Part shown: in pieces, positions 6,200 through 46,936 of the stretch
How the letters are laid out: each line of letters opens with the position of its first letter
Numbering within the stretch: position 1 is the stretch's first letter
Assembly (NCBI RefSeq): GCF_000143415.4
Contig: NW_003314303.1
Coordinates: 1,456,676 to 1,520,675 of the forward strand
Direction: 5' to 3'
Length of the DNA stretch: 64,000 nt
From: Selaginella moellendorffii
Lineage: Eukaryota > Plantae > Lycopodiophyta
Made by a program: the position numbers and the translations under genes
The notes under the pieces: model-generated
Databases searched by the model: none
What the model was told of the DNA's origin: nothing
Seen by the model: only the letters and a program-made list of their open reading frames with translations

Positions 6200-6328
6200 G
6201 AGGCTCTCGACCTTTCAAATCGGAGCTTTTAGTCCAAACATGTTACGCTCTTTTAGCTTTCGCTTTGGCCACTACCACATGGCGCCCTTTCGGCTCCACT
6301 TTGGGGCCTAGGGATTTGGTGTCTCACA
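6200..6328 (-). mobile_element. LTR terminal fragment of the same family
   Basis: Matches ~45875-46001 and ends in the same GGGATTTGGTGTCTCACA terminus. Confidence 0.8.
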
Positions 6329-6369
6329 GAAATATGGAGATCCTTAAAAGCACAACCAAAATGATAAAG

Positions 6370-21930: not shown

Positions 21931-23027
21931 GTATGTACCTTAATATTCAACTTTGAACTGCAAGATCATAGATCGATCTTATGATATACTAATGAAATAT
22001 GTAACATTCTAAAAATATACCAGAATATCCAGGACTTGCTCCAGAAGCTGAGATCCAAGAAGGCTGTTGTTTCATCACTTGCTTTCCATCTCCAGAGGCA
22101 GATTAGCCAGCCCGTTAGGTTGTGAAGAAACTCCCGCTGAGCAAAGGATATTCATAGCGAGATTCAGTTAAGGATTAAGAACTAGAGTCAGGCTGAAGCG
22201 AACATTATTCCGTTTAAAAGCCATTATACAGCCAGGGCAGCATAGTCGTTTCTTCTTCATCATTCCAAAGCTCTTCACGTTTCACTCGCTCGCATACTTC
22301 GGACAAATTGCAGCAATTGGATGAATGACACGTGTCAAATCAAAAATCATAAACCCAACATTTAAACTAAATGCAGACTGGCCAAAATGAAAGAACACAC
22401 ATTGTCACCGCTGGATGAATAAACGTGTCAGGTTAAGGGAGTTAAGCCCAACACAACCTTGGCCGCGAGGGATTATGCCCATTATAATCAATTTTTGAAT
22501 TTTGATTCTGCTTCTTTTGCTTTCTCTGCTGATTCTGCTGCTTTGGAGATGGCTGATACTGAGATCCAGCCGGTCGCGGAGATTGCTGATCCAGAGATAC
22601 AGCCGGGCCTGAGGCTAAGAAACCTCAGCTTGAAGCGCATTTGCTACTGTTTCTGCCGCCGATGACGAAGAAATTGACTTGACCAAGACAGAGGAAGAGG
22701 CTGGAATGTTCTTCCTGCTCGCAGGGGTACGCGAATGTCTCAGAAGAGCTGCTGCAGTTGCTGTTTCGGATAATCCCCCAGCAGATGCTGCAATGCAAAT
22801 TGTAAGGCTAAAATTCATGAATTTACTACAAATTCGCCTCAAGCTTGCCACAAATAATATGCATCTACAAAATTGCCTCTAAAGCTGCATCAAATATTTT
22901 GCCTCTACACCAACAAAAAGGATTTCCTCACCATCGCATCAAACCTAGTCAGTGATTAGGACTTTGTTAGGTTACAACCTCCAGATCGACCTGCACGCCA
23001 GCCAATCTTCTTCAATCGTTTGTTTGT

Positions 23028-23656
23028 TCAGAATGGCAAAGCTCTGGGAGAACAGACGCCTTCTACGGAGTTTGGCCAGCCTGGGACTCTCGGATCGCAC
23101 GAACGGTGGGAGACTTCCTGCGGGCACATGACAACGGTACACCCATTCTTGAGATTGAGCCTCTGGTAGTTCCGGGTGCAGCTGATATTACGTGGGAAGT
23201 GATCAAGTACGGCACCAAGCATAGCTTTCCACCTGCAAATGCTTTTGTCTTCCATCTTTGTCATCGAACTTGGCAGCAACAACATCTTCCACTCGTGGCT
23301 GCAAACACCAACCTGAACACAGAACTCTGGGACATCATTCGGATCTTGACTCTATGGACGATCTACAGAGAAAGAATTGACGTCTTATATCACCATAGGA
23401 CTCAGCCGAACGACATCAGAGCCGCTGTCAGCTTTTGGTCGGATCTCTTGGTTTCACTCGCATCTCGATGGGAGAGGATCAAGCACAGGTCAGCCAAAAA
23501 GCAGCAGCAGTTTCTTGGCACGTGGCTGGTAATGAGGACTTTCAGGAACGTCAGACCTTTCGGTGTCACTTGGAATTGGAAGCCGCCATGGACTTTGAGT
23601 GGTAGAAGAACAACTTGAAATGTTCTCCAGTTTTTCTATGAATATATACACATTTC
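23028..23656 (+). mobile_element. 5'-truncated LINE (ORF2 C-terminus and tail), diverged family
   Basis: WDIIRILTLWTIYRER and terminal W.W.PP motif like the other LINEs here. The tail AATATATACACATTT resembles their AATGTACATACACGTTT tail. Confidence 0.6.
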
Positions 23657-23664
23657 ACCTAGTC

Positions 23665-23712
23665 TGATTAAGCCGGGGTTCGAACCAGGGACCTCAAGCA
23701 TGTGAGTGAACT
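23665..23712 (-). pseudogene. 3' half of a tRNA-Val(CAC)-like sequence (tRNA pseudogene or SINE head remnant)
   Basis: Minus strand reads CTCACATGCTTGAGGTCCCTGGTTCGAACCCCGGCTTAATCA: anticodon loop, variable loop and B box/T arm. No D arm or A box. Confidence 0.6.
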
Positions 23713-23796: not shown

Positions 23797-24380
23797 TTGG
23801 ACGATGTGAATGACTATGTCTCATTGCAGCAGCATCTTCTATCTCTAGGTCTTGTGCAACAAGGATCCCAGTTCTCTATCTTGCAGGAGCTGCGATTTGG
23901 GTCTGCCGCTCCAGAGTTCTTCTGCATTCCTTTCACCCAAGAACCTCTCACAAATGACTCAGTGTATTATGTCATGATTCAAAGACCCTCTTCCTCAGGT
24001 ATGATTTCCTCCTACTATCTCATCAGACTTCTGATGCTTGGAAACTCGTGGAGAGGGTGAAACAATCCGGGGTATTTGGATGCATTCTGCTTATGGGGGT
24101 TAGTGGCTGTGGTAAAACAAAGTCTACAATTATGGAGGTGCTACTTGACGGGAGGCTTGGTACAGTAGTCTGCATTGCAGGGATAAGCATCAGCATCATG
24201 CAGATGGAACTGGATAGTTATATCATGTTTGGTGTGGCCAAAACTGTGAACGGGCCCCCTGGATTCGTAACAAGCTTTGACAAATGGGAGAGGGCAGTGG
24301 ATGTTTACAACTTTTGCAAAAAGTATTTGAAGATGCTTGGCCTTACAACAGCCAACTACAGCAGACTGTTTGAAAAGTGA
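23797..24380 (+). pseudogene. Fragment of a P-loop NTPase gene
   Basis: ILLMGVSGCGKT: hydrophobic strand plus Walker A. No intact start or Walker B visible; truncated by the adjacent LINE. Confidence 0.4.
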
Positions 24381-24384
24381 GAGT

Positions 24385-26550
24385 GGTTTGCCAATGAGAG
24401 TGGTTGTAGCCAGGAGCATCATCCTGCCTAGCATTTGGTACCACCTCTCAATTTGGCCTGTCCTCGAACACACTCTCAAAAAGGTACACACGATGGTTTG
24501 TAAGTATCTGTAGCGGGGCACGCTTGTCATGGGTAGGATCATGGCCAAGGTTGCATGGCAATCAACAGCACATCCACGAGTCCTTGGAGGACTTAGAGTT
24601 ATTAATCTGAACAACATGGCAAAGACACTACGGTACAAAATCCTCCTTATTGGCTTCCAACCAGGTAACCAACCCTGGAGACTCATGTTTAGGCAGAGCT
24701 TGTTGGCAATCCGGCCTAGGCACAACACTCCAAGACTGTGGGAGGAGGATCCATATTGGCTTTTTGCTAAAGGGCCGAAGCAAGTAGTTAAGGGTGGCAC
24801 ATTGGTTCAAGGGTTTCTCAGGCTATGGAGCGAGTTTTCAGTTAGTAGGGTAATGCTAGGGCAAATGGAGGATTGGCTGAACTAGCCGCTATTCTTCAAT
24901 GACCTCTTCAAAGTGGACCACTACACTATCTAGCCACTACATTATTTGGAGAAAGTTGCATAGCAAAGGCTTTCAAACTCTCAAGCAACTAATGGGAGTT
25001 CTGAACAAGGATATGAGGCAAATGCAAGTCTTTAACCTAGGACGGTGGAGGAAATTCCACCTCAATCTTCTTCGCATCATCAGAACGGTGAGTGAGGTGA
25101 AGAAGGGGCAGCTCTAGCCTAGGTGTTGTCTCAAACTTGGAGACTTTGTGGCTCTACAATGGGACGTGGTGCCAGGAAGGGAATGACTCAACTTGGGGGC
25201 TTGGACACGGGTGTTTATGGCCTCGAAACTAGCTTGGGAGGATGGCGATATGGAGGTGTGGTTTGTTGTGTCTCCCGAACAAAATCTTAAGTGTCCTTTT
25301 TGGGTTATGAGAGGTGACATGCTGCTGCCAGCGGGAGATGAACAGGCCATGCCAATGGTGACAGATGATAAAATCAAGGGCAAGATTCAAGTAGTATGAC
25401 AGGCTTTGAAGTAGTTGGTGGTGGTTCAATCGATGGCCACACTAGAGTGGGATAGCATTCTCAGATGGTGGCAACAACAACTTATTGAGGATTTGGATTG
25501 GGACCCAATAGCATGGAAATGAGGAGTAACAAGCTTCTCCTCGTTTGAAGTCAAAGAAGCATGGGATGGTCTCTTGACCAGCAGGGAGGAGGCCCGAGGG
25601 GAGATCCCCAAGCTTTGGAAGAAATGGATCAAGCAAGGAGTTGAAGCAAATCAGGTGGTGGACAACACGTTTGCATTCTGGAAACTATCGGTACAGAAGA
25701 AAGTCAAGGCCGCTTCTTGGTTGGTGGCAAATAACATGCTACTAGTAGGACAACGGTTCTGGGAGGAAGTATGCCGACGATGCAAAGAGTGTGGTGAGCT
25801 AGAGACAGCATGACATGCACTTTGGGAATGTGACATGGACTTTGGGAATGTGATGTGGCAAGAGAGGTATAGTGACAGATCTTCAAGGTGACATAGGAAT
25901 TAGGAGACATTCCAGAATTCGAGGCTTGGAGTGGGGATATCCTCCACTGGTTTGAGGGAGCTAGAAGTCCAGCCATTGGTCCAGCGTGGAGGTGCATCTG
26001 TTGTCATGGATGACACGCATGGAACATGCGAGTTTGGTGGGATGCGACAGGGGCTGAAGTCGGGATGTCAGTTTGGGAGGCAATTGGCCATGAGCGCTAG
26101 TCCATCTGGAGAGCAACTAGAGTGCAAGCACTTTGGGAGCCATGGAACCATTCTCACTTTGATGGGCAACAAGTGAGGATATAGGTAGTGGTGGCATCAT
26201 GGTGGAGACTCACTTTTGCAGTGATGTGTCTTCATTACACCACCCTGAAAGAGCGGGCAAAACCAAGATTGCTTGAGGAGTGGAGGTCTAGGTGGCTCCC
26301 ATGCTTCGGCAAAATGGTAGGTGGTGAGATTCACTGGCAGTGGTGCCCCCCAGACTCTGTTCTACATTCAGCTCATCAGGGAGACTTGGACATCGACATG
26401 ATTCAATTGAGACGACCACGTCCACTTCTACTCCAGGACTAGGTCCAGCTACGACACTAGAGGATCACGTAGAGTAGCTCATTGAGAGGGCAACACACCC
26501 AGTTTTTGTATTAGTCCCATTGGGATATGGGGAATGTACATACACGTTTA
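24385..26550 (+). mobile_element. 5'-truncated L1/Tx1-like LINE (post-RT ORF2, zf-RVT, 3' UTR), decayed
   Basis: SIILPSIWYH, KVAW....P...GGL.VINL, C..C.E..ET..HALWEC and terminal WQWCPPD. The 3' UTR ends AATGTACATACACGTTTA at 26550, followed directly by the 20-bp target. Confidence 0.85.
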
Positions 26551-26614
26551 GCGATCTCACCGAATTGCAGCATCGCAGGGTGTCTTTGACCCTAAATGCG
26601 TCTAAATCCTAAAC
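26551..26614 (+). repeat. 3' tip of a Penelope-like terminal repeat (target site plus degenerate CCCTAAA repeats)
   Basis: GCGATCTCACCGAATTGCAG-CATCGCAGGGTGTCTTTGACCCTAAATGCGTCTAAATCCTAAAC matches 39263-39356 and 40025-40103. Confidence 0.85.
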
Positions 26615-28794
26615 TATTTGTGGTTCAAAAGCATCCAAGCGGGCCTCACCAGCTTTGATTGGTTGCAAAAGCACGTCCACCAAGTAAGCTTAAGTTCTCA
26701 CACTGTTTCTTTTGTCTCTAGAAGAATTTGGTAAATTTGAATAAGAATCTATTGAAGTTGGACCTCTTCGCCAATGGCAAGCCAAGACAACTCTATATAT
26801 TGGCTCTAGAATAGGAGAAATGAGCCACAATGCCCCTCACTCCCTTTGCATGGGTCTAGCACAGCAAGTCTCTAGGTCGGGCATTTGTATTAGCCTCTGT
26901 GTGTTGTGTCCCGCCACTAGAGTGCCACAAAAATCCCCACCCGAAGCTGCTCATTGCCACTAAGGGTTTGGGAGCTAGCTTGAAATCTCCATTTAACAAT
27001 TTTTTTAGCGTCTAGTGCAGCCCAACTCCCCTGATTTGGGTCTGGCATGGCAAATCCCTCACAAAGGCTTTTTACCCCCTTTAGTGTGTTGCTTTGGCAC
27101 CACCAAAGGATCACCAAAAATGCCATGGGAATGCTCCCTACCACTCAAAGCACCTAAGCTGCCTAGACATCACCACAACACTGCCAAGAATCCACCCAAT
27201 CTGCCACTTGGAGAACAAAAATACTGCCCACTGACACCTCTGTTTTCTTTCCCCTCTTGCCCATACTCCACTGTCAGATCCTCTTGATCTAGCGGCCCAC
27301 AATGCTCAAACATTGAGTGCAAAAAATTTTAAGTCCCTACATTTAGATTTTTTGTCTTTTGTGACTATGGAGGAAGGAGCAACGGGAGAAAGCATGTGAG
27401 CATGGTAATCGTGTTTTGAGCTTGCTAGACTACAGTTTAGGGTTTGGCCTGCCCTCTCCTCTTCTCTGAAGGGCTTTTTCGTTTTCTTGCCTAGGGCTAA
27501 CCCCAAGGCACCATAGCAGCTTAGCCTTGCTAGCAGTAGCAGCCGTCGATGCAGCTAGTGCCAACTATAGCAGTAGCCAGCAGCCTACCAATGCTAGGCT
27601 GCTGCAACCGCAACTCCAGCCGGTCAACCAGCTGCATCATGGTTAGCTACCCGCAGCTGCCACACCCACCCACGACTTGCTGCCCAACATGTCGTGGCTT
27701 GGCCTGGCCCAGTAGCGCCAAGTAGTGTCACAAGCTGCCACGCACTGTTGCATGCTGCCCAAAGCCGCCCCACGTGCGCCAAGCACCACCCAGTGACACA
27801 CGGTACTACCATGTACTGCCCAATACCACCTAGTGCCACCCAGTGCTGCACAGCATCACACAGCGTCCTTAGCACTGTGGCTGTCCTTAGCACTACAGCT
27901 GCGACCAATGATGCCCGGTCATTGCCACCTTCGCCACTTGCCATTCTAGTGCTTGTACCAGACAATCATGATGACATGGACCCCTCACTACTCATGCCAT
28001 CAAGGCCAGTAGCACTAGGGAGCTCTAGCCACGCCATGACTGTAGCTGAAGCAGTTCTTGCTCCAACTCCACTAGCTCCAATGTCCACAGCAAGCATGTC
28101 TTGCTCAACATTTGAGTTCAGAACCATGTCATGAACAACCTCGTTATGTGAGCATTCCTAGCTTCTTGCTAAGGCCATCTATGACGAACGTGTGTCGCAC
28201 CAACCACTCTCACCGTATTTTAAGCGAGTTCTAGACACTAGACGTGCGTTGTAGCTCTGCACAATGCATGTTATCACGGCTCACATCGAGACACACATGG
28301 AGAACTTGGAGCAAGATGACACTCTCTTGAGTGTTGCCAACTTCTTTTGCAACGAGGTGTTACATTTGGCATCGCAGTGACTTCCCCCCACCTCCTCTAA
28401 CTCGGGCACAACATAGAATTCCTCAGACTCTATGGCTTGCAGCCTTGACATGAGCAAGCTGCAGCAAAGTACACGACATGGTCCATACTCTGCTATACAG
28501 GAGCATTGTGTGGCAAACACTGCAGTGTCATATGTGGCCAACTATGGCAGCCTGACATCAGAGTAGAAGGTTTCCCAGGCAGAGGGCACTAAAGACGTGG
28601 AGCATGTGAAACGTGCTATTGGCAATACCTTTACTGTCTAGCCAACATGCCAGTTCCCCATGCCGGACTTGCCACGTGCACTTTGAGCCCCATGCCATCA
28701 AAGAGACCTGCTCTTTCTACGTCGATAACTTTCCATATCACTACATCAGATCTCAATTTTAGGATGCATTTGAGTCCCTCCTAAGGGACCATGG

Positions 28795-29387
28795 TGTAAA
28801 CTCCTGAGTTTGGTCTTCCCTGGAGGTCACCCAACCCAGTACTATTCAAACCCAAGGACGCTTAACCCCAATTATCCTAAGACCCTTAACTGATTGGAAA
28901 AGGGGGTGCACTCTTGTTCATGGGCCCTTTCCCTCTATATTTGGACCCCATGGATCGTCTCTCAAGTCGTTCCCTTTGGTTGCTTACAATCCACCATGCT
29001 TCCCTACAAGTTCACACCCTCGTGAACGGAAGCTGAGAGCCGCAGCTCTCCTGAGAGCCCCGCTCTCTTGACACCCTACCCCTCGGCTCGAGCCCAGCGG
29101 GAGCAAACTGGACTAGCCAGATGTTAATCAACATGTGGTGTGATTCCCCTAGCCAACCAACAGAGTCGGACCCGAGACCGCTTTGATACCAAATGTAAAC
29201 TCCTGAGTTTGGTCTTCCCGGGAGGTCATCCAGCCCAGTACTATTCAAACCCAAGGACGCTTAACCCCAATTATCCCAAGACCCTTAACCGATTGGAAAA
29301 GGGGGTGCACTCTTGTTCATGGGCCCTTTCCCTCTATATTTGGACCCCATGGATCATCTCTCAAGTCGTTCCCTTTGGTTGCTTACA
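28795..29387 (-). mobile_element. Complete Cassandra-like TRIM with 5S-rRNA-derived LTRs, inserted in the PLE
   Basis: 194-bp LTRs at 28795-28988 and 29194-29387 (TG..CA) with TSD CATGG. PBS TGGTATCAAAGCGG (tRNA-Met) and PPT-like GGGAAGCATGGTGGAT. The LTR contains GTTAAGCGTCCTTGGG..AGTACTGGG.TGG.TGACCTCC..GGGAAG, matching the 5S A box to C box. Confidence 0.93.
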
Positions 29388-29807
29388 CATGGAGCCTACC
29401 CGCATGGGGTCCTCCCTGCCAACCTTGGCCCTTCGACCGTAGAGCTAAATGCTACAGCGATGAGATGGATTTTCCCACCACCTATGGTGCTAAATCCCAT
29501 GCCATCGCCACCCAACATGGGAGTAAAGTAGCGACCCCCATCGGAGAGAGGATTTCCAGGACCTGGCTCACTGCAATAGCCTCCGTCACCTGTGATGCAT
29601 GGCTCTACCTCACGGCCTATCTAGCCCAAGCCCACCATGTCACATCGACAGGAGCAGCCAGTGTCTATGCCTCCATGCTTGACACCTTTGCCACGGACTC
29701 GACAAGCATCTCCTCATGCTTCGATGCCAAAACGGCTGCCCACACCTCACTCGACTAGACTGTAGCATGTAGTGTCATAAGAGCAACAATGTCCTCCCCC
29801 TGCTCTT

Positions 29808-30689
29808 GTGGACCCTCTAGTCACTCTACCACCTCAAGACTGCTCAACAGCACAGAGGACACGCACAAATGCTGAGGCCATCCCTCTCCAGCTAGAGCGA
29901 TGCTCATGCCAACCAGCTCCAAGATGTACGTCTAAGCCACTAGCTGCGTCACCTCTGCCACTGGCCATTGGAGCAGAAGATGGCTACACACTTGGAGGCT
30001 TCAAGAACATCGATGGAGCCTTCAACAGCATCCTAGCATGCTCCCTGTGAGAATTTTTGTAGGAGTACAACACTCTGGTGTCATCGAGATTAGCTCTCCA
30101 GGGGCTTAAGGACCTGAAAGAGCAAAAGAAACACCTGCAGTCACTCTGCGCACGCCCATTGAAGCTCAAGGTATCTCGTCACGCTCAGGATGGCCTCATG
30201 AGCAAAATTGCTGAGGTGCACGAGCGCTATCTCACAGAGCTGCACGACATTCTCATTAAGGCTTGCCAAGACGAGATTGAGACACTCCAGAAGCTAGTCT
30301 CCTCGGGCCTTAAGGATCTCTTCTGCAGCTGACTCAAGGATCTTGTGACTTTGACACTCAACTATTGTGGCGCCACAAAGCACGACTCCATGTACCACCA
30401 CCTACTTGCACACAAACAATGATGCACTATCAAGTTTGACACTGAGACATCATTCTTCATGGCCGTCAAGGGAATTGAGAACCACACGCAGGCGACAGCG
30501 ACACAATGTCTAAAGGAAGCCATCGACGCGGCAAATGCCTCTGCAAACGCCCTCCCTAAGGAGTAGACCATCGCAAAGCTCGTGAACGCCGCATTCACCA
30601 AGGCCTTCCAAAGCCAGCGACATGCAATGCTGTCAAATGCAGAAAAAAAGAAGAGGAAGCGAGAAGAGAAGAAGAAGACACGAGAGTAA
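29808..30689 (+). pseudogene. PLE ORF1-like coiled-coil/basic protein, interrupted by stops
   Basis: One reading frame (ORFs 29808 and 30078 and beyond) with several in-frame stops. Heptad-rich (LKDLKEQKKHL, QDEIETLQKL) with basic tail EKKKRKREEKKK. Lies directly upstream of the RT. Confidence 0.55.
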
Positions 30690-31199
30690 CGTGATGGCAC
30701 ACTGAGTAAGCATGCACAGGGCCTGAACAAGAGACACCGCATCTTCTTTGCCGCTCACTTTGATGAAGCTGGATCCTAGTCAGCAACACCAGCCCGCAGC
30801 GATTAGGGAAACGGATAGTAGTGGAGTGGGGCTACTAGGACTCCTCCCACCCATTCCGCTGCCTTGGCTTCTTCTTCGAGGGGGACTCCATGCCGGACAT
30901 CTCCAGCTCAGAGTGGTTCCCACGAAAAGAATGCTAGACGTGATGGCCCTCGCCATTCCAGCCGCAGCAGCTCCCTGCAGTAGCGCCCACACTGCACCAC
31001 GGCAGCACAGGTCGTCTTAGGTCCCCAGCAACCATGAGGACATTCACCGACTAGAGGCAGCAAGGGAACTCGCACACGCAGCCCTCAACCTCGCCTTGGG
31101 TAGAGCTTGACCCCTGCCAGCCACAAGAGTAGGACCCCAGCACCATGATGCCACTCTTGCTTGCACTCATGCTTGCCAACCACCAAAGTCCCCATGAAG

Positions 31200-33061
31200 G
31201 GAATCCTCAAGACTACTGGTCACCACTGACTAATCCGTCTAAGGCCATCCTTGATATTGTGGGACAATGTCCAGTCTCAAAGTTCGAGAACCAAGTGGAG
31301 ACTAGAGCCATACACAACCTCTCGACCAGGGCTCTCTTAGCTGCCGATATCCGTCTCCTCTCCCTCGGCTTAAGGTACATCCCGAACTCAACACTACTCA
31401 GAGCCCCACAGATTGTGGAAAGCTCTAATGCTCTCTGCCGAGCCATTTGACTCCATCACCTTTTCAAGGACAACAACTCAGCCCTATTGGAGTTTCGAGT
31501 ACTGAACCCAAGCTTCGAGCCACCTCCAACACCAGTGCTTGTGGAATGACGCCTTGCACACATGTGAGGCAACCTACTCCACAAGCTTGAAGGAGCACAC
31601 AAGTCTTGCTCCTTTGCTCATGGCTGGAATAAGTGTGCTCTCCACTCTCTCGCGACAGACACATCCATCATCATCAAGCCCACAGATAAAAATCTTGGAG
31701 TGGTAATCCTGGATTGCAATTGGTACACTAAGGAGGCTCTCCGCCAGCTGAATGACCTACTCATTTATGTGAAGGTCCCCTCTATGCCATCCAAAATCCT
31801 CCAAGAACACCTCACCAAGCTCATCACAAAGCACCGTAGCTGCCCATGGCTCAACAACTCCACGCAGCAGTTCTTGCTGCACCAGCCTGCCATTCCTTGG
31901 TAGGCTTGCATGCTATATTTCCTTCTGAAAATACACAAGCAGCCAATAAGGGGCCAGCTCATTGCGAGCTACATCGGGACTTTGTGGAAGCCACTCACGC
32001 GTTGGCTTCACCGCCAGCTCTACGACATCCTATTGAAGCAGCCGATGTTTCTTTCTGACTTGCTCACGCTGCTGCAGGACCTCCTCCACCTATAGTTCCC
32101 GTGGGATTGCTGGCTCTTCACGTTCGACATAGAGAGCCTCTACCCAAGCATCCCCACACAAGAGGGTCTCCAATGCCTCCATGACTTCATGTTTGCCGAG
32201 TATGGCCACACCACACGCTCGCGATTTCTCATGGTTGCAGCTGCCCTTGTCTTGGAGCACAACTACATGGAGTTTGATAGTAACCTCTACCAGCAGATCC
32301 ATAGCACAACAATGGGCTCCAATTTTGTGGTGGTCTACACTTACCTCTTCCTCTACTCTCTTGAAGCTGAGTACAAGCATGCCACCAACAATTGGCCTTT
32401 CTACCTACGAAGGTACATAGATGATAGAGTGGGCATTTGGACACATACACGAGCAGGCCTCGAACGATGGCTCCAAGGATATGGCACGTTGTGTCCGTCA
32501 ATCAAGACCACCTCGGTGATCTCGCTTGAGGAGTTGGATATCCTTGATATCCACTTCTTCAAAGGCCCTCGCCTTGAAGAGATTGGCTGCCTCGACTTGT
32601 CCATGTTCTAGAAGCCCCTCAACGCCTACCAGTACCTCCCCTGGATGTCAGTTCACCCACAGCACCAGAAAGTGGCATTCATCCGTAGTGAGCTTCGGAG
32701 ATACCTCCTGCACAACTGATGGATTCCATGCCATGTGCACGCAGTTCTAGCACCGCCTCCATGCCCGGGGATACCTAATCTCATTCCTCCAACACTGCTT
32801 CTCCAGCATCTCCTATGACCAGCGACATCAAGCTCTCCTTGCATGTCCGCGCCGCTCCAGCGATGCTTGTCGGCCCCCCTCACCTTTAAGCTGCTTTACA
32901 CACTCCATAGTGCGCAGCTAGGCTTGGGGGACATCCTAAACCCTAAACAGGTGATGGATGAAGCTCCCGGAGACACACTCCCCCGAGTGATTACATGCTG
33001 GAGACGCTCCCCGAACCTTGGTTCGTTCCTGGTCAGAGCTAAGCTCCCTTCGCGAGCCTAG
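31200..33061 (+). pseudogene. Penelope-like reverse transcriptase (disrupted), without GIY-YIG endonuclease
   Basis: IHNLS..LLSLGLRYIP, IIIKPTDKNLGVVILD, FTFDIESLYPSIP, YQQIHSTTMGSNF, RYIDD (32414-32425), LDILDI, KPLNAYQYL..HP..K..IRSELRRY, ending ITCWRRSPNLGSFLVRAKLPSRA stop. Confidence 0.92.
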
Positions 33062-33089
33062 CCATGTCTTGTACTACACTTTGCAAGAC

Positions 33090-33850
33090 ACAGAAGCATA
33101 TGTTTGCATCCCTCTCTATGTAACTGATGACTCCCAGGGTCAGGCCGATGGATTCTAGGTATGTCCCAGCCACCCCAAGTCATCCCTCACCAGTCAATGC
33201 TCAGTCTATTGTCAAAACTAGAATATTTTCAAATATTCCCCAACAGTCAGATGGTTGACTGAGTCAATGAGGCCTACACCATTTGATTCTACACCTCTTT
33301 CCAAGTGTGACTATGTTGGTCTCATCTCCTAATGATGGACACTACACCTTGGAAAGCTTTCGAATCTTATAATGATGCCATGCAACTACATTGACAACAC
33401 ACATGCCAACACCTAGCAGGAAAAGGGCCTTTCTGCATGACCAAAGGACCTTGGGTACGTACCAGTCACTTCAGGCCACCTCCCCTTTGAGTCAACACAC
33501 GGTCAACGTGAAGTCAACGACCAGAATGAAATATTCCTGAATATTCCCTGACAGTCTTTTTGTTGACTGAGTCAAAACGGCATATACCATCGGATTCCAC
33601 TCTTCCTTCCGATTGTGATTATGTGAGTATCTACTCTGAACTCTATACACAATTCGTTGAAAAGCATCTATTCCATTAAAACGGTGCTGCTCCTCCAACA
33701 TCGGCGACATACACCAGCAGCTCGCGGGATGGTTCTCCTCTATGTAACTGTTGGACTCTGGGTATGTATGAGTGACCCTCCACCATCCCAGTCCACACAC
33801 GGTCAACGCAGGATCAACAGTCAATGACAGAATATTCCTTGCAAAGTGAA
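33090..33850 (+). repeat. Degenerate ~300-bp tandem repeats in the PLE 3' region
   Basis: Recurring blocks: CTCTATGTAACTG (33113, 33737), AATATTCCC..ACAGTC..GTTGACTGAGTCAA (33231, 33540) and CACACGGTCAACG (33496, 33796). Confidence 0.6.
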
Positions 33851-34373
33851 CCACATTTTTCGTCTCTAGGTATGTACAACTTACACAAGCATTGTGGACT
33901 TAATGCATGCATTATATCATGCCACATCTACAAGTTATCTTGCGTCAAAGGTACGTTACTTGCCGGACGAATACTTACTCTCTTTGTCGATCCGCTGAAG
34001 ACATTCTATGCAACTACCACTACTGCTGAGTAACCAGCTCTAGCTTTGCTACATTTGCATCTTCACGAGCCAACGCTGCCACGCCACTTTGCATGGCCGC
34101 CAGATGGACTCGCGCCAAGTAAGAGAGCCAAAATATAAGTAGAGTTGATGCCAAGCTAGGGTTAGGGTAAATGCTAGATGACTACACCCAGATGATGAGT
34201 CCCAAAAAGGACGAAACTAGTCTCGGGTTGTCTCTTGTCCTTTCCCTCACTCTCGAATGAATGAAAATTCATTCCCTTGCCTCCTCTACTTGCTCTTGAT
34301 CATGTTGTTTCGACAATAGCACATGGAGAATGTGGATTGCACAAAGTGGTGCCGCAATCTTGCCAGATTGTAG
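33706..34373 (+). repeat. PLE terminal repeat copy 1 (completed at 39263-39356 after LINE insertions)
   Basis: Direct repeat of 39358-40045. Confidence 0.9.
34184..34231 (+). ncRNA. Minimal type I hammerhead ribozyme motif (core C3 mutated)
   Basis: ACACCCAG-ATGATGA-GTCC-CAAAAA-GGAC-GAAA-CTAG-TC-TCGGGTTGT: stem I, near-CUGANGA core, stem II, GAAA, palindromic minimal stem III and a GUC cleavage triplet. Confidence 0.8.
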
Positions 34374-34603
34374 GTGGCGAGATTCGCTGGCAATGGCGCC
34401 CCCCAGACTCTGTTCTAAGATCAGCTCGTGGGGGAGACTTGGACATCGACATGATTCGCTCGAGACGACCACGTCCACTTCTACTCCAGGACTAGGTCTA
34501 GCTGCGGCATATGAGGATCACGTAGAGTAGCTCATTGAGAGGGCGGCACGCCAATTTTTTGTATTAGTCCCATTGGGACATGGGGAATGTACATACACGT
34601 TCA
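34374..34603 (+). mobile_element. Severely 5'-truncated LINE flanked by a 20-bp TSD
   Basis: Same 3' end as 26320-26550. Flanked by GCAATCTTGCCAGATTGTAG (34354-34373) and GCGATCTTGCCAGATTGCAG (34604-34623). Confidence 0.9.
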
Positions 34604-34623
34604 GCGATCTTGCCAGATTGCAG

Positions 34624-36795
34624 AAAGGAAGACGTGCAGAATTTTGGCTGAGCGTGTTGCAATCTGCCCAAGGGCAAGTAGATGAATGGCTGGTCCTAGG
34701 AGACTTCAACATGGTTGAGGACATCTGCGATTGCAGGGGAATGTAGGAAACAATTCAACCATGCGAGTAGGAGCAATGGAGTCAGCTTGTGGATGCATTG
34801 GGGATCATGGACCTCCAACATGCAGTAGGGTTTGCACCTCATGCTCACCCCTTTACGAGGTGGCAAACAATGAACTCCCAGTCGAGACTGGACCGGATTT
34901 ATGCCTCAACTCGCATATGGTAGGATCCTTAAGACGTGGCTTGGTTTCACTTCCTTCTCCAATCACGACCCCCTCTACTGTGTGATCAAGCTCCAAGGAA
35001 CAAAGGGACAGCAGTCCAGCATTCAATCATGAGAGCAACACTGCAAGACTCGGTGGCAAATAGGCTAATACATGACACCCTTGTGCAAGACAAGATGGGA
35101 CTGATCCCAATGCTCCTATCTTGCTCCTAGAAGCTCCAAGCATGCCAGAAGGACCTCAAAGGTGCAGTGATGAAGGATGTGAGATTGGCCAGGTAGAGAG
35201 TGGCAGCAGCACACAGGATGTTGCTAAACACACAAAATGAGAACAAGTGGCAAGCAGTACTAGATGAATGGGAAGCCAAACTATGTGACATGGAGTATGT
35301 AGCATGGAGCAAGGGTGTCTAGCCATGGAAGATGGATGGGCCCTAAACGAACACCTTCTCAACAAGGCTTTCTTTAGGGGAATCAGGCTAGTGACTAACT
35401 CTCCTCCCATCCTGGGACTGAAGCACAACGACAGGAGGGTCATTGAGGATCAACAAGGGATGCAACAATTTGTTCAGAAGTTTTACCAAGTGCTAGACCC
35501 TAGAGAACGTGGCAGTAGAAGTGCTTGTGTCCCTTCCCCAGCGTGTCCCCCACGAGTGGTACGACTCACTGAGGACGGACTTCACACTAGAGGTGCTTTG
35601 AGAAGCGCTCGGGAAGCTCAGCAACAACAAACAGCTAGGTATCAACGGCCTATTGCCTATTTTCTTTGAGGAGCATTGGGAGACTTTAGGCCCGTTGCTG
35701 TTGCAAGTGTGGTGGGATGCTCAATGTGATGGGGCTTTGCCTCGTGAGATTCTTGAGGGCCAGATTGTGCTAATCCCAAAGAGGGGGGACTTGCAGGAGT
35801 TGAGGAACTGGAGGCCAATCACCATGCTCAACACGTCCTACAAGATCTATGCCAAAATAATGACCCTCAAGCTCCAAGCTGTTATGCCATTGGTCATTTG
35901 AGAACAATAGGCAGGTTTCATTCCAGAATGGCAAATCACAAAAAACATCTGGATGTACCTGCTGGCTCAAAGATGGGTATAGATCTTTGACCAACAAGCT
36001 ACTGGACTTCAAGAAGGCATATGATCGTGTGTACTGGAGGTTTCTAGAGGAGTGTATGCATATGATCGGCATCCTCAGAGAGATGGTTGCTAGGATCTTG
36101 TTACTGTATTGTGGAGCTGCAAGTAGAATCACAATCAATGGTGAGACGGGACTAAGTTTTCAGCTGGGACGCTCGGTGCACCAAGGGTATCCGCTGGTGC
36201 TTTACCTCTTTATGATTGTGGTTGAGGCCCTGGGCACGTTTCTAGCAGAAAGCAGGCGTATCAAAGGACTCACCCTGCCAGCTGTGAGATAGCAACTTCT
36301 GAGAACGACAAGGGTGATTCAAGAACTCCTGGATGGAGCATTTGCAGATGACACGGCCTTGTTCCTACTCGCAATCAAGGAGAACCTGAATGCAACTAAG
36401 AAGGCGCTGGAGACTTTCAACCTCGCAACTGGTGCAACAATTAACTGGAACAAATCAGTGGGCATCAACTGGGGTTGGCCAGGCATCGAGTCCTGGGGCC
36501 AAGACATTGGCTTCCAGTGGCTCAAACCAGGAGAGGACACTAGATACTTGGGGATTCAAATTGGTACCTGGTTCAGCGTAGCACTTCAGAATGACATGAC
36601 TCTGTTCTACATTCAGCTCATGGGGGAGACTTGGACATTGACATGATTCAATTGAGATGACCATGTCCACTTCTACTCCAGGACTAGGTCCAGCTACAAC
36701 ACTAGAGGATCATGTAGAGTAGCTCATTGAGAGGGTAGCATGCCCAGTTTTTGTATTAGTCCCATTGGGATATAGGGAATGTACATACACATTTA
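34624..36795 (+). mobile_element. L1/Tx1-like LINE: part of APE endonuclease plus RT, internally deleted and joined to the 3' UTR
   Basis: WLVLGDFN, SRLDRIY, SNHDP, NWRPITMLNTSYKIYAK, LLDFKKAYDRV, RSVHQGYPL, FADD and YLG motifs, then a jump to the shared 3' UTR at ~36598. Confidence 0.88.
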
Positions 36796-39262
36796 GTGGA
36801 GATGCTTCTTTCGAGAGAAGAGAGGAAAAGGAGGAAGGAGGAGAGCCCCGTGTGCTGCTGCCCTGGCATGTGCATTGTTGCTGCCATCCTCTGCACTCCT
36901 TCCCTCGCTCCTCCTCATACTATCTCTCTAGTGCCTTCTAGCACACTCCCAAAACTTAGAACTTAGGGTTTGCAATCTAGCAAGATTGCACTTGTATTTT
37001 GATTTTGCCCAAACGGCTGGGAGTTTCCTCGATTCCTTCAACAGGGGCCTTATAAGAGTGGAGCATTAGGTCCTCTTATAATGGCGCAGTGAGATCTGCC
37101 ACAGATCAGGAGATCTTGCTCACCCTAGTTGCAGCGATAGCTAGGGTTTGCAAGCTTTCACAATTTGGGGCTTTCGGTTCTAGGGGGAAATCAAGTTGTG
37201 GGAATGATTGAGGTGAGGAAGAGGGATGTCACCTCCACTTGCTTCGTCGGAGTGGCTATGGCAAAGAATAGGCTCTTTTTCTCCTCTTTTCTCTCCCACA
37301 GCTTAGTTTTTGGTCTTTTTCCATTTCGACTTCATGGCTGGCAGCTAAGGAGTGGCGAGAAGCACTCCTAGCAGCGGCACTTCATTTAGATCTGGGATCT
37401 GAGAGATCTGGACGACCCCAACTCGTGCTCTGGAATTAAGGTTCTTGGGCAGCAGCTAGGGTTAGGGTTCTTGGCGGCTGCTAACAACTAGGGTTAGTGT
37501 TTGCCCTGTCTAGGGCTATGGTTCCTTGGTCGCTAGGGCTTCTAGGGCTGGTAGTGGCAGGTCACTATGGTCCTAGGAGGCTCTTAAGGCATCTTGACAG
37601 TGGACAGACAGTTACAAAAGCTTTAGAAATGGAGTTCTTTGCCAAGATCTATGCGATCTTGCTTGCCTTGATGCGTGATAAAGATGGTAGTGGTCAAGGA
37701 TTGGTGGAGCTGGATGTCACTTTAGGAGTGGCTTGGACCAGTTAGGACTTGAAAAAGCTTCTAGTGTTTTGGATTCTCTTTGGAACACCATGCATAATGT
37801 CTTGCTTTGAGGATGATCGGGAAAGGAGGATTTTTGGATTCAGTGGTAGGGATTGTTGCCACAATTGGGGCCAGTGGCCAATAGGGTCAATTCGGTGCTA
37901 CACATGTAGGGGATCCATACATTTCTTCTCCAAAGCTTGCTTTGGAGTTTTCTCCCTTAGGAGGAGGTTCGTGCCCTTTCTCTAGTCCCTATTGTAGGGT
38001 TAGGACTCATTCAAAGATGAGTTAACGTGCTTGTCTCATGTGGGAGGCAAAGTAGCACACTCTAGCTTTGAGTTGGAGGACACTCACACTTCATACAGAG
38101 CTACGAGTAGGAGCTTCATTGCGATTGGACATAGTTTTGGCACCGAAAGCATGCTGGCGGTGGTGTCACGAATGTGACTTTGGGTATTGAAAGTTATCTG
38201 TCGGCCAGTCCTTACGGACACTCTTTCCTTACTACCATGATTGCAAAAAGTTGGTATTGCTGGACCCTTTATCAGCCCCTTTTATTCAAGTGTTAGTAAA
38301 TTGGACTTTGTATTTGTACTTGGCCGGATGAGCATAAGGACAGAATTCCTAAGTGTTTATTTTGCCAAGCATAATTGGCCTGGCTTTTTAGTTCTCTTTT
38401 GCTCTGTTTTACACTAGTTTGACAAAAACCCTTGCATATTGAAACTAGTCCCTTAATATCGCTGGATGATAGTTATAATGTCTACAAACACCCTTGCTAT
38501 CATGCCCTTTGTGTTAGTCTCATTTTAGTCCCAAATGGTATTTAGAAAAAGTGTTTAGATTTGCTCATTTGGCACATCTAGCTCCCGCTTGCGTGTCTGT
38601 CCTTGTTCTGTGTATGGCTTGGATTTAAGCCCAAGTTCCATTCTATGCTAGCTGGTGGAGTACCCATGTCCTTGCGTTAAGCCACCGGTATGCTAAAATA
38701 ACACCAAACTTTGTTTAGCTCTGTTTTGCATGTTGATCTTGGCATTGGGATGCTGGTTACTCTAGGACTATTCTAAGTTGCTTTGTGCTCTTGTCCCTTC
38801 GCTCCTTAGGCTGTATGTTTAAGAGTTGCTCCGTGCTCCCATGCCATTGCTCCTTGGCTCCATACTTGGGAGTTTGACACTATTCCTTCATTCAGTGGCC
38901 CAAGGCTTTGAAACTTGGGTTCCACACCACTGTCCTTTGGACATGTGGCATGTGACATGTGGCATATAACACATGGCATATAGAGGGTTTAAGTTCTGCT
39001 TCGTGGTGTTATCCTATGGTAAATCACCATAGGATAAAGAGTAAAATCCATGTGTGCTATAGGTGGAGCGCTACATGGCATGTCTCACAGGTCATGGAGC
39101 GTACCAGGTGGCTTCAAGCTTCGCAATAGAGTCACCTGAGAGGCGGACGGCCCAAGAGCAGCACCGAGCATTTGTGCTTGTAGCTTCACTAATTTCTCTG
39201 AGAGTGCGCTCTCAATGTTGTTTTGATCCCTTTGGGACTGGGGTAATGTATATATATGTTTA
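36796..39262 (+). mobile_element. Probable non-autonomous LINE derivative (ORF1-like remnant plus LINE-type tail)
   Basis: VFWILFGTP and a CYTCRGSIHFFSKAC zinc-knuckle-like motif at ~37760-37940. Ends GGGTAATGTATATATATGTTTA, like the LINE tail, directly before the 20-bp target. The interior assignment is tentative. Confidence 0.45.
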
Positions 39263-39300
39263 CCAATCTTGCCGGATTGTAGCACTGCAGGGTGTTTTTA

Positions 39301-39356
39301 ACCCTAAATGCATGAAATCCTAAACGCGCCTAAATCCTAAACCCTAAACCCTAAAC
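39301..39356 (+). repeat. Interstitial plant-type telomeric repeats (CCCTAAA and variants)
   Basis: ACCCTAAA...CCTAAATCCTAAACCCTAAACCCTAAAC. Confidence 0.9.
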
Positions 39357-39357
39357 T

Positions 39358-40103
39358 GACACACACCGGCAGCTCGCGGGATGGCTCTCTCCTATGTAAC
39401 CATTGGACTCTAGGTATGTATGAGTGACCTAAGGCCCTCCACCATCCGAGTCCACACACGGTCAATGCAGGATCAACAGTCAACGACAAAATATTCCTAG
39501 AACATTTCTTGCAAAGCGAACCACTTGTTTTGTCTCTGGGTACGTATGGCTGACACAAGCATTGTGGACGTAATGCATGCACTATATCACACCATGTTTA
39601 CAAGTTATCTTACGTCAAAGGTACGTCACTCACCGGACAAATGCTTACTCTCTTTGGCGATCTGCCGAAGACATTCTCCGTGACTACCACTGCTACTGAG
39701 TAACCAGCTCCAGCTTTGCTACGTTCGCATCTTCATGAGCCAATGCTGCCATGGCACTTTGCATAGCCACCACATGGACTTGCACTAAGTAAGAGAGCCA
39801 AAATATAAGTAAAGTTGATGCCGAGCTAGGGTTAGGGTAGACGCTAGATGACTACACCCAGCTAATAATTCCCAAAAAAAAATGAAAGCTGTCTTGGGTT
39901 GTCTCTTATCCTCTCCCTCGCTCACAAATGAATGAAAATTCATTCCTTTGCCTCCTCTACTTGCTCTTGATCATGCCGTTTCAACAACTGCATATGGAGA
40001 ATGTGGATTGCACAAAGTGGTGCTGTGATTTTTGCCGGATTGCAGCACCACAGAGTGTCTTTGACCCTAAACGTGCCTAAATCCTAAATCCTAAACCCTA
40101 AAC
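39358..40103 (+). repeat. PLE terminal repeat copy 2, uninterrupted, ending in telomeric repeats
   Basis: Direct repeat of 33706-34373 with an empty target site at 40025-40045 and CCCTAAA-type repeats at 40064-40103. Confidence 0.9.
39854..39902 (+). ncRNA. Decayed second hammerhead motif
   Basis: ACACCCAG-CTAATAA-TTCC..-GAAA-GCT-GTC-TTGGGTTGT at the homologous position. It keeps the core C and a fuller stem I, but G>A changes disrupt the core. Confidence 0.55.
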
Positions 40104-41473
40104 CAGTTTCTCGAGGTTTTGACACGGTGCTTGTGGTGGTTGATCGTTTTTCCAAGATGGCCCATTTCTTGCCATAGATGATGTCATCAGTGATTGTGGT
40201 TCTCAATTTGTTTCTAGAGTTTGGCAACAGTTCCTTTCTTTCCTTCATGTCAAGAGCCAGCTGTTGACTTCCCACCATCCTCAAACTAATGGGCAATCGG
40301 AGCATACAATTCAAACTCTAGAGCAATACCTTCAATGCTTTATTTGCCATCAACAGGATGATTCGGTTGATCTTCTTCCCTCTACTGAGTTTGCCTACAA
40401 TAATTCTCAGCACTCCTCAACACATTCATTTTTTGTGAATTATGGCCTTCAGCCCCATTGGTCATATTCGTTACCTCCAGCTCCTGGTAGTTTCTAATGC
40501 TTCGATTGCTGCTTGTGTTGTTGCTTTGGATTCTCTTCACAAGGATGTTCATCACCACCTTGCTCATACCCAAGCTGCTCATCACCATGTTGCTAATCAC
40601 TCATGTCAACCTAGTCCTTCATTTTCTATTGGATCTAAGGTTTGGCTTCTTCAGCATCATTGGAAGACTACTTGCCCTTGCAACTAGTTGGACTACCAAT
40701 GTTTGGGCCCTTTTCCAGTTCTATCTCACATTTTTGAGGTAACTTATCGACTTGATCTTCCAACATCCATGGGTTTGCATCTAGTATTCCATATTTCTCT
40801 TTTGGAACCTTAGCATGCTCCTTCGGATCCTACTCGTATTCCTCCAGCTCCTCCTACAATTATTGCTGGTGAACCAGAGTTCAAGGTTGCTGCTATACTT
40901 GATTCTAAGTACAGGTATTGCAAGTTTTATTATCTTGTCGATTGGCTTGGATATTCACCTAGCAATCGTATGTGGGAGCCTGCTACTTTTGTTGCTCATG
41001 CTCCTGATTTGGTTGTGGATTTTCATTGTTGCTATCCTCTCAAACCTGGTCCTACACCACTTCAGTTGCTGGTCAGTGCTTGGCAATAGGAGGGGGGATG
41101 ATATCATATATTTTCCATCTCTCTCTATATTTACTGAAGGTATTTTTCACTATATTTGCTCCTTACGGGATTTGAACCCTGGACCTATAGTGATGAGATT
41201 TGAACCCAAGATCTACCATGCATGTGCATACATGCATGGGCATCCAGGATTGGTATGGACCCATGCCTAAATTAGTTTCCTGGATTAGCAAAAGGGTTTA
41301 CCAAATTAGGTTCTAAGGACCCTATAAAAGTAGGGTTTCTAGGACTTTGTACTCAGAGTGTTCAACACAATTCTTTCTTCCTTCAACTTTTCTTTTGTCT
41401 TTGTCTTTTGATCTTGTCTTTTTCCTCATCATCTCCTTCTCTCGCTGATGAGCTCTTGACAGTTTTGATGACA
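40104..41473 (+). mobile_element. 3' part of a Ty3/gypsy chromovirus: integrase core, chromodomain, PPT and LTR
   Basis: VVVDRFSKMAHF, HPQTNGQSE, FAYNN, VFHISLL, EFKVAAILDSK, YYLVDWLGY..WEP. PPT AGGAGGGGGGA at ~41088-41098 and LTR ~41102-41473 ending ATGACA. Confidence 0.88.
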
Positions 41474-43955: not shown

Positions 43956-45339
43956 GTTAAAACAAAAAGATAAGTTTGATTTAGGATGAGGGCATTTCAT
44001 AGAGCTTGTTGGAAGGTGGGGTGGTAGTGTTGGAAGGGAGCTAGAGATTTGCCACTAACCTACATTTCATGTGTCCAAATAAGTAAGATCCTCAGTTATA
44101 TAGATAGGAAGGCTACTTTTGTTTTAAGACATAATGGTGAAAAAGGATGTCTAATGAGGTTTTTTAGTCAATAGTCCTTTTCTAAGCTTTTTTTTATCAA
44201 TGGGCTGCTCATTTGGGCATCTACTTAAAGATGCACAGAGTTGCCGATCAAAATGAAGCTCAAATATTACTCTAAAACCTTAAACCCTAAACCTTTTTCA
44301 CGAAAATGCATAGTAGTGAAGGGGTTTTTGGTTTTTGGTTTTGTAAGCGATTAATTTTTCCATTCTACTTTAGTCACTTAACCGCACCTCCAACCACTTG
44401 AAGGAGTCTCCTTCACAACCTCCATAAGTCCCATTCAGAACTTGGGGCTTGCTAGCCCCGCGAATGGCATCCACACCACTCAACTTTTGCACTTGGTCCA
44501 AGTGCTCCATGTGTCCGATCCCATGACCGACACCCCAAGGTACCACTGACATACTAGCCCGTTACGCTAGGCCATGCCCATTCACCTTGGTCACATCAGT
44601 GGTCCAACACCACCTACATTACAATCCTGTCTCTCAAAGATTAGGCCATCCATCCATGAGTGGCTATCCCAGATCCACTCCATAACAACCTCAGAATGCC
44701 TGCAGACATGGGAATAGCCTTCCCCAATGTCTCCTTTCCGGTCCCCACCAAGTCCCTTTCTGTCCATGGTCGTGTTCACCAACACTGCCACTGGATCAAG
44801 GCCCACAGGCCTGACCACTAAGTCCAACTGTCCTCTAGGACTTCCTCACTGTGTGACTGTGTCCCTTGCCACCACACTAGAGGGCTACTCCTCTTCCTTT
44901 CCACAGTCTGGGACTTTGGGGCAACATTTTGGAACACCGTGGCCCTACACAGGCCTCATGGGTACTCTCCTCGCCTTCTACCTTTGGGTGCTCTAGCCAT
45001 GGGCTTAGAGCGAGGTTCCGTTGAGCCACACTAAGTATCCAAGCAAGTAGTGCCACCCATACTTGGACTGGGAGCATTGGCCAGTCAATCTCCCGGGGGA
45101 ACTAGAGCCGGCTCTTGAACACTTCACCAAGCTACCCCACTTGTTGGTCCGTGTTCACTCTAGTCTTGGACTTCCCAGTGGTCAGTTCATCACCCAACAC
45201 TGGGTCGGGCCTTCCTGGGCCAAACTGGCCTTTCCTGGCCAAACTGGCTCCACTACAGTCCTCCCCCTTACTATACTTTTGGAGCTCACCAAACCCCCCA
45301 GGGTCTGGGAGACGAATGCTTTGGGCTTTCACCCTCTCA

Positions 45340-45770
45340 GACTTGAACTCAGATTCGGACTCAAACTCGGACTCAGACTCGGACTCGGACTCGGGCTCGG
45401 TCTCGGCCTTGGCCTTGGTCTCGGTCCCGGTCCCGGTCTCAGTCCCGGTCCCGGTCTCAGTCTCGATCTCGGTCTTGGTCCCGGTCTCAGTCTTGACCTC
45501 AGACTCCATCTCGGGTCCTTCTCGGATTCCATCTCGGGTCCATCTCAAACTCCGTCTCGGTCCATCTCGGACTCCATCTCGGACTCCGTCTCAGACTCCA
45601 TCTCAGGTCCATCTCGGACTCCATCTCGGGTCCATCTCGAACTCCATCTTGGTCCATCTCGGACTCCATCTCAGACTCCGCCTCGGTCCATCTCGGACTC
45701 CATCTCAGACTCCACCTCGGACTCCAACTCGGACTCCATCTCGGACTCCATCTCGGACTCCATCTCGGAC
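45340..45770. repeat. Hexamer/dodecamer arrays inside the LTR (GACTCG, GGTCTC, GGACTCCATCTC); counterpart at ~51115-51560
   Basis: Directly visible. Copy numbers differ between the two LTRs. Confidence 0.95.
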
Positions 45771-46836
45771 ACTTCCACGTGTCATGCGTTAGTCCTTTTG
45801 GGTCCCTTTTTGGAGCCTCGCTTATTGCTCACTTCATGCTCGTTCCTTGAGCACTCTGTTGGGAGTTCCACTCTTGCTCTCGACCTTTCAAGTCAGAGCC
45901 TTTTAGTCCAAACGTGTTACGCTCGTTTGGCTTTTGCTTCGGCCACTACCACGTGGCACCCTTTTGGCTCCACTTTGGGGCTTAGGGATTTTTGTCTCAC
46001 AACTCCACCACCCCTAGACGAAGTTCGATGTCCTCATCGAACAGTAAACCCTTTTATAAAGTAACACCCGCAGGTATTACCATTTCCATCCTTGGCACCC
46101 ATCCAATATTTGTCTATGGTTTGACCCCGAAGGCTCACCATGCCTTATCCATCCTCTAAGGAACATAGTCTCTCCAACCTAGAGACTCCCTCGACCACCT
46201 AGGGTGGTTTGCTCCCTTTTATTGGTTCGGTTCTTGCGAAACCCGTTAGAGACACCCTCTCTAACTCAATTCCACTACTCATTCTCGAGTAGTCTCAGAT
46301 TCCATTAACCTAACCTTTGCACTTTGGAAATTTTGATTTTTGACTTCTCAGAGTCAATTTCCTAGGTGTCTCCGACACCTTACGTTGCACATGGTGCAAC
46401 TCCACTTCCCTATCCTAGGAAGTTCTTTACTTGAGGGTACCATCATCCTCTCTTCGATATCGTGCCACCTTTGGCACTAAATTCCAGTTATCATAATTGG
46501 TGCTAGGGCTGCCCACGGCCCTATTATTTGGCTACCTTATTGCTCCCCCCTTTGGAGCATCCACTTTCGCCAAATCGGAGCGGTTGGGAATCCACCCTTG
46601 GGGAAACATTGCCTTTCCCACAATCCGTTAGTACCCAATATATTAGTGTTCTCGGCCTAACTTTGCCATTTGGATTCTTTCCCATGATTCCCATAGCTCT
46701 TTTCTTAGCCACTAGTCTTTTGCTCCTATCCTTGATTGTTGCACCCAGCAACATAGGATCGCTATCTCCATTTTTTAGGTTTCCTTTCAGTTCCATAGCA
46801 AACACTTTGTTTTTCCAAGTCTAGAGGGTGTTCACC

Positions 46837-46936
46837 NNNNNNNNNNNNNNNNNNNNNNNNNNNNNNNNNNNNNNNNNNNNNNNNNNNNNNNNNNNNNNNN
46901 NNNNNNNNNNNNNNNNNNNNNNNNNNNNNNNNNNNN
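46837..46936. other. Assembly gap (100 N)
   Basis: Run of N. Confidence 1.

Follow-up and report, generated by a model that had tools for sequence, protein, structure and literature searches.

The window analysed here is a stretch of 64,000 nucleotides of Selaginella moellendorffii scaffold GL377607.1. Window positions 2645-23892 are identical to the scaffold locus around the protein encoded at 12645-13892. Between positions 24385 and 40104 it holds a chain of units of a Penelope-like element (PLE), whose 3' end carries a hairpin followed by CCCTAAA-type repeats, and long interspersed nuclear elements (LINEs) are inserted in these units. Four insertions were found at one nucleotide of the PLE hairpin in the window: three 5'-truncated L1-type LINEs (copies A, B and C) and one non-coding partner. 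A sequence-only reading of the window had proposed that LINEs target this nucleotide repeatedly and specifically parasitise a telomere-associated PLE. The features are listed below, where RT is reverse transcriptase, TR1 and TR2 are two copies of the PLE 3' repeat, and the target is the 20-mer that follows the LINE tails.

24385-26550, plus strand: LINE copy A, truncated at its 5' end; it retains the RT end, zf-RVT and the 3' tail and has no poly(A)
26551-26613, plus strand: target variant (C at position 8, A at position 13), hairpin 3' arm and degenerate CCCTAAA tract, forming the 3' end of an upstream PLE unit
26614-33705, plus strand: PLE body with a decayed first open reading frame (ORF) region and an RT ORF (about 31145-33060, RVT_1), no GIY-YIG motif after the RT
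33706-34353, plus strand: PLE 3' repeat TR1 as far as the insertion site, with the 5' hairpin arm at its end; 84% identity to TR2
34186-34228, plus strand: type I hammerhead ribozyme in TR1 with one core base altered (Rfam RF00163, 36.3 bits, E = 6.3e-6)
34354-34373, plus strand: target copy on the left side of LINE B; 17 bp are target, and a further 3 bp can be assigned to target or LINE
34374-34603, plus strand: LINE copy B, a 230-bp 3' end of a separate subfamily, least decayed
34604-34623, plus strand: target copy between B and C
34624-36795, plus strand: LINE copy C, with the end of the apurinic/apyrimidinic endonuclease (APE) domain, RT, an internal deletion at 36596/36597 and the 3' tail
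36796-36989, minus strand: inverted block, consisting of a target copy (36970-36989) and the first approximately 175 nt of the partner
36990-38163, plus strand: middle part of the partner, no blastx match, diverged copies among contigs
38164-39061, plus strand: high-copy solo long terminal repeat (LTR) inside the partner, a passenger, with the 5-bp target-site duplication GGTGG and copies in locus L003
39062-39262, plus strand: 3' part of the partner, the last approximately 43 nt LINE-tail-like (76.7% over 43 nt)
39263-39356, plus strand: target copy, hairpin 3' arm and CCCTAAA tract, the remainder of TR1
39357-40104, plus strand: TR2, a 5'-truncated 3' unit of the PLE in which the hammerhead is decayed and the hairpin (40017-40052) empty, with a CCCTAAA cap
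28795-29388, minus strand: Cassandra-type terminal-repeat retrotransposon in miniature (TRIM) with 5S-like LTRs, inserted in the PLE and outside the LINE/PLE system, in this haplotype only (empty site in locus L011 of the other haplotype)

The LINE tail motif occurs without mismatch at 26533-26550, 34586-34603, 36778-36795 and 39245-39262 (0.11 matches expected by chance). The target 20-mer starts at 26551 (three mismatches), 34354 (none), 34604 (none) and 39263 (one mismatch), where 0.04 would be expected, and a further copy lies on the minus strand at 36970-36989. One extra match to the tail motif, with two mismatches, is found at 1931. The tails end in CAC(G/A)TT(T/C)A, lack poly(A) and abut the target directly; all four tails (4/4) sit at the same nucleotide in the window. 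The boundaries at 26550, 34603 and 39262 given in the sequence-only reading were therefore confirmed far above chance. Its description of three LINE 3' ends holds for 26550 and 34603 but fails for 39262, which is the tail of the non-coding partner. It also treated the tail at 36795 as lacking a clear target; the target is in fact present 175 bp further on in inverted orientation.

The 230-bp insertion B is flanked on both sides by the 20-mer, as had been noticed. The duplication is real, but its length is given as 17-20 bp instead of 20 bp, since GGTAG also stands in the LINE sequence immediately upstream of the point where B begins. One more base is ambiguous at the 3' junctions. If the duplication is read as 16 bp, both nicks might fall at symmetrical positions of the inverted repeat. 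Duplications of such lengths are ordinary for APE LINEs. The empty site noted at 40025-40045 was recovered; it forms the top of a hairpin whose stem measures 13 bp (z = -4.8), and degenerate CCCTAAA-type repeats begin about 20 nt behind this site. In TR1 the order is 5' arm, target, B, target, C, inverted target, partner, target, 3' arm, i.e., four target copies and three insertions, so that the proposed stacking upstream of the telomeric tract can be read directly in one hairpin.

The LINE family shows an L1-type layout: an APE domain before the RT (only the domain end is left), a non-LTR RT with a C-terminal zf-RVT and no RNase H. Three different 5' truncations and the duplication of 17-20 bp, within the range of about 7-20 bp for such elements, are also of this type. 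The poly(A) tail that is usual, if not universal, in L1-type LINEs is absent. Copy C starts at 34624, as first read, within the last part of the APE domain and continues into the RT. Pfam matches are Exo_endo_phos (E = 0.089) and RVT_1, and the former region shares 33-38% amino acid (aa) identity with that of full-length relatives; the RT of copy C was translated through its breaks with an X placed at each. Copy C is 64-67% identical to the RT of P0002, a Selaginella relative. Contigs from other copies lose the match at 36596, the deletion point of copy C. Copy A (zf-RVT E = 9e-5) is 47-60% identical in aa sequence to P0002. A and C belong to one subfamily and differ by 12 transitions and one transversion. 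Of the 198 nt compared, 18 differences are private to B, which has 7-8 transversions compared to A and C. No full-length copy of the family is present in the window or in the loci examined.

Copy A lies in a separate PLE copy and is found in the other haplotype at 86-89% identity; the comparison with that haplotype (locus L011) extends as far as the PLE start. It is followed by the target, hairpin arm and telomeric tract, and no telomeric cap precedes it. No target and no PLE arm were found upstream of its 5' end in either haplotype. This structure fits the proposed co-mobilisation within the PLE transcript, in which a PLE-primed cDNA would have ended prematurely within the LINE; a subsequent break, a fusion or a deletion accounts for it equally well. 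Divergence between the two haplotypes is 11-14% in the LINE and PLE (24385-28794 vs. L011) and only 1.3% in the neighboring gene of 518 aa, a very uneven rate across a few kilobases. Immediately to the left of copy A, both haplotypes contain an ORF of 110 aa (24048-24380) with a Walker-A-like GxxGxGKT motif and no Pfam match.

The junctions, the duplications and the markers of independence were observed directly. The three left targets in TR1 carry CCAG or CTAG, and the right-most target and the empty site carry CCGG. The target behind copy A is a different variant, with C at position 8 and A at position 13 in both haplotypes. The CCAG/CTAG variant fits a mutation that arose after the partner had inserted and was copied by later duplications. 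Since the derived A is shared by the three left targets, the order of insertion was probably partner, then C, then B. The CpG observed/expected ratio (0.87 in B; 0.44 and 0.31 in the other two copies) is consistent with B as the youngest. The first 32 nt of B fall inside the deletion of C; together with the private differences this means that B is not a copy of C. Duplication of C as the source of B was ruled out by the deletion and the 7-8 transversions. The different 5' ends, the two LINE subfamilies and the locus-specific target variants argue that the four insertions are independent. The earlier proposal of independent events at this locus is thereby upheld, with two LINE subfamilies, the partner and two PLE hairpin variants.

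The partner amounts to 1.57 kb within 36796-39262 and is split by the 898-bp solo LTR. It has no protein match in blastx, and its likeness to the LINE tail is limited to the last 43 nt (76.7%). The tail at 39262 was previously taken for a LINE with a diverged tail; this was rejected since no coding match was found, and only the last ~43 nt are common to both elements. Contigs from other copies were obtained by matching reads and contigs with positions 34150-40110 (5961 letters). Diverged contigs cover the body of the partner, indicating that it has other copies. The partner is thus SINE-like (short interspersed nuclear element) in its LINE-shared 3' tail, lack of coding capacity and several copies. 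It has no Rfam or ARAGORN match; the copy in the window may lack part of its 5' end, and its beginning is rearranged. A LINE-shared tail without coding capacity is a mark of a trans-mobilised partner (PMC3747384), and the partner was probably mobilised in trans by the LINE enzymes. Contigs show loose ends at both borders of the solo LTR 38164-39061, with the primer-site-like TGGTATCA behind it. This LTR is often nested with an abundant repeat family (5359-9446, 44341-51791 and L003) which has hexamer-based GAGTCC-type arrays in long terminal-like repeats.

The start of the partner is inverted together with one target copy. Read on the minus strand, the hairpin sequence at 36972-36989 departs from the target by two transitions; the plus-strand reading requires two transversions. 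In 300 shuffles of the partner the best match never had fewer than four mismatches, compared to two observed. A forward target and a chance match were both rejected by these strand-specific mismatches and shuffles. The opposite-strand joint 36798/37001 is present in one contig. The match to another copy breaks off at 36991, and 36738-37225 is spanned by a contig without differences. The simplest reading is an inversion of the target plus ~175 nt of the partner in which one breakpoint coincides exactly with the LINE nick site. As a guess, the inversion might have arisen from a re-cut there that failed. Some contig joints run back within 36937-37295, indicating that the 5' part of the partner varies among copies.

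The host PLE carries a hammerhead in its terminal repeat and C-rich telomeric repeats at its 3' end. The Atlas clusters nearest to its RT are RT/HTH_animal proteins, most commonly from rotifers and cnidarians. A motif search found no GIY-YIG pattern after the PLE RT in the decayed ORF, and the element is called endonuclease-less from this search and the short distance between the RT and the 3' repeat. Selaginella PLEs are known to carry hammerheads (PMC4209133), and telomere-associated endonuclease-less PLEs of S. moellendorffii were reported by Gladyshev and Arkhipova (2007), as cited in PMC12477314. Such elements prime at chromosome ends, giving rise to chains of units (PMC12477314; PMC8557442). 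TR2 is 84% identical to TR1, sits behind the telomeric tract and is joined at its end to an LTR-retrotransposon integrase fragment. The TR1/TR2 arrangement is the chain expected from endonuclease-less PLEs priming at chromosome ends. In this window the chain is interstitial: by computation, approximately 162 kb separate it from the scaffold end, its C-rich strand faces inward, away from that end, and it is surrounded by genes and LTR debris. A location at a chromosome end was not found for this chain. The label telomere-associated PLE is borne out by the CCCTAAA caps and the hammerhead but not by the present position, and the chain here is a fossil healed chromosome end.

Other observations concern the PLE and its surroundings. 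An 85-bp direct repeat occurs in its 3' region (33232-33316 and 33540-33624), and a hairpin containing CTGATGA near 33125 may be a decayed second ribozyme. PLE-like RTs with 40-50% identity to the host RT were found in two JGI samples (L001 and L002), on contigs that end before the 3' end. A second Cassandra-type TRIM with 5S-like LTRs is located at 62158-62751. A more distant LINE, also 5'-truncated, lies at 22945-23657; its 13-bp duplication is exact in the other haplotype. This LINE adjoins a tRNA-like T-arm on the minus strand (~23672-23710), and the NCBI annotation makes it part of a gene.

Among the relatives of the LINE RT, XP_024517766.1 from the same species is the best match (62% identity). 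P0002, the single Selaginella relative retrieved by protein searches, is approximately 64-67% identical in DNA and cut at both ends; it and its relatives share the RT plus zf-RVT domain layout. The tail pattern was not found in the metagenome or genome contigs searched, and P0002 was not found in viral contigs. In RT trees, copy C and P0002 form a branch with a support of 100, and the Selaginella family falls among moss, fern, conifer, liverwort and Chara LINEs, outside the angiosperm group. A firm placement as sister to the moss clade was rejected: FastTree gave 0.81 only and IQ-TREE resolved no sister.

Eighty related metagenome loci were examined, in which the moss-type relatives share 35-41% aa identity with the Selaginella family. 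None of the 80 has a PLE or telomeric tract beside it, and the related loci scanned gave no tRNA or Rfam match; beside the moss and fern relatives no PLE, hammerhead, rRNA or tRNA was found. One group is 61-78% identical to a Sphagnum magellanicum protein. These Sphagnum-like LINEs insert just behind CCCCATATAGTAT of a solo LTR of approximately 830 bp with 5-bp duplications (L032, L042, L045, L081 and eight more loci in JGI metagenome contigs). This fixed site accounts for 13/23 of their 3' junctions, or 12/21 when redundant ones are removed. At four loci both junctions are present, each with its own 14-15-bp duplication, and empty sites exist. The end of the tail is similar to the bases preceding the nick. 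No description of a Sphagnum-like LINE family at a solo-LTR site was found in the literature. The moss insertions indicate that targeting of other elements recurs in this plant LINE lineage. In the moss relatives the targeting is a preference (~57%) and not an exclusive rule.

The best explanation of the locus, which we consider likely, is repeated sequence-directed insertion of an L1-type LINE family at one nucleotide of the PLE 3' hairpin. A poly(A)-less Selaginella LINE family would insert by target-primed reverse transcription with a strong preference for that nucleotide. The APE would nick at about GTGCT^GCGATC and a second nick would follow 16-20 nt on, so that the top of the hairpin is duplicated; both positions are deduced from the junctions. 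The non-coding partner with the same 3' tail may borrow the LINE enzymes. New copies would enter the left-most target, which keeps an intact upstream arm that presumably matters, and the stack would grow from right to left in the order partner, C, B.

Several points weigh against this explanation. The evidence comes from one locus and two PLE copies only, none of the LINE copies is still active and the APE is only partly preserved. P0002, the one further Selaginella relative retrieved, has lost its tail. The matching with 34150-40110 was swamped by the high-copy solo LTR and gave no counts of on- and off-target junctions. The LINE at 22945-23657 has a similar last 15 nt and an unrelated insertion site, and the Sphagnum-like group is off target in 9/21 junctions. 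Of the parasitism specific to the PLE that was first proposed, repeated insertion at this locus stands; genome-wide exclusivity finds no support in these data, and moss relatives are on site in only ~57%.

Alternatively, the junction was simply inherited: a master PLE received an old insertion once or twice, and PLE retrotransposition or recombination then multiplied it. PLE chains do grow by copying of 3' ends, A and C are of one subfamily, and copy A has the tail, target, arm and telomeric tract yet no 5' target. Such spreading cannot yield three different inserts with intervening target copies in one hairpin, however, and B and the partner differ in sequence from A and C while the hairpin of copy A is a different variant. 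We consider this account unlikely. A preference for structure or niche appears somewhat less probable still. Under it the LINE would nick DNA in a hairpin or cruciform, or subtelomeric chromatin that is open, and the hairpin of the PLE would be one hot spot among many. Such a preference would agree with a target on top of a 13-bp inverted repeat, with near-symmetrical nicks giving a 16-18-bp duplication and with the ~57% on-site moss relatives. It agrees poorly with the single-nucleotide register across four events and with a junction located in the stem, outside the loop; other inverted repeats in the window carry no tail of the family. The assembly is old and the region is repeat-rich, but an assembly artefact or chance is very improbable: contigs without differences cover 35831-36524 and 36738-37225, the junction of copy A is the same in the other haplotype, and the expectation for the 20-mer is 0.04.

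The closest likeness to the repeated LINE insertion seen here is found in crocodilians, in which Tx1-Mar LINEs and SINEU occupy Mariner-N4_AMi (Kojima, 2015; PMC4494074). There, too, an L1/Tx1-type LINE and a non-autonomous partner favor one site of another transposon, tandem insertions form around the target-site duplication (16 bp in that case), and hitchhiking is the rival to be excluded. That system differs in its animal genome, DNA-transposon host and snRNA-derived partner head; here the host is a telomere-type retroelement in a plant, and no small-RNA head was found in the Selaginella partner by Rfam or ARAGORN. Xenopus Tx1L, as cited in the same paper, likewise is an APE LINE within another mobile element; its host Tx1D is a non-autonomous piggyBac element and not a PLE. 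The Tx1 clade is described from animals (PMC4494074), and the present host is S. moellendorffii. With no named Tx1 reference in our RT trees, the Selaginella LINE family should not be filed as Tx1.

The published telomere-associated PLEs of S. moellendorffii resemble the host PLE in having an RT without endonuclease, a type I hammerhead, telomeric repeats and chains of truncated units. In the parts of these accounts available to us, no site-specific LINE is named inside them, and the chain described here is interstitial. SART/TRAS, Tx1-1_ACar, Zepp and MoTeR are telomere-region LINEs that insert into telomeric repeats (listed in PMC10088271). They are similarly non-LTR elements accumulating at chromosome ends; in contrast, the target here is a non-telomeric 17-20-mer in a retroelement, and the telomeric tract starts ~20 nt further on. 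PLE-X elements of Selaginella target 28S rDNA (PMC8557442). This is also precise target-site insertion by a retroelement in the same genus, but there the PLE does the targeting and here the PLE is the target. In a literature search covering sources other than Repbase and the 2007 PLE paper, neither a plant LINE with a transposon-site habit nor a LINE aimed at a PLE was found. It was concluded that this kind of system is known in animals, and that the plant host and the Penelope-like target are new in the literature searched.

The insertion interrupts the hairpin some 20 nt upstream of the tract with which PLEs are thought to prime at chromosome ends. It could disable this priming step or ride on it, which would make a three-way interaction of LINE, PLE and telomere. 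A broader proposal is that early land plants carry an overlooked sequence-directed L1-type lineage specialised on mobile elements, and that the spikemoss family rides the telomeric PLE to chromosome ends via the PLE RT; we put this forward tentatively and regard it as possible but doubtful. The moss result suggests that target choice in the plant lineage switches among repeats. Lineages that switch targets would offer naturally occurring variants of the endonuclease in which the evolution of APE specificity could be studied, and which might serve for site-directed insertion in plants.

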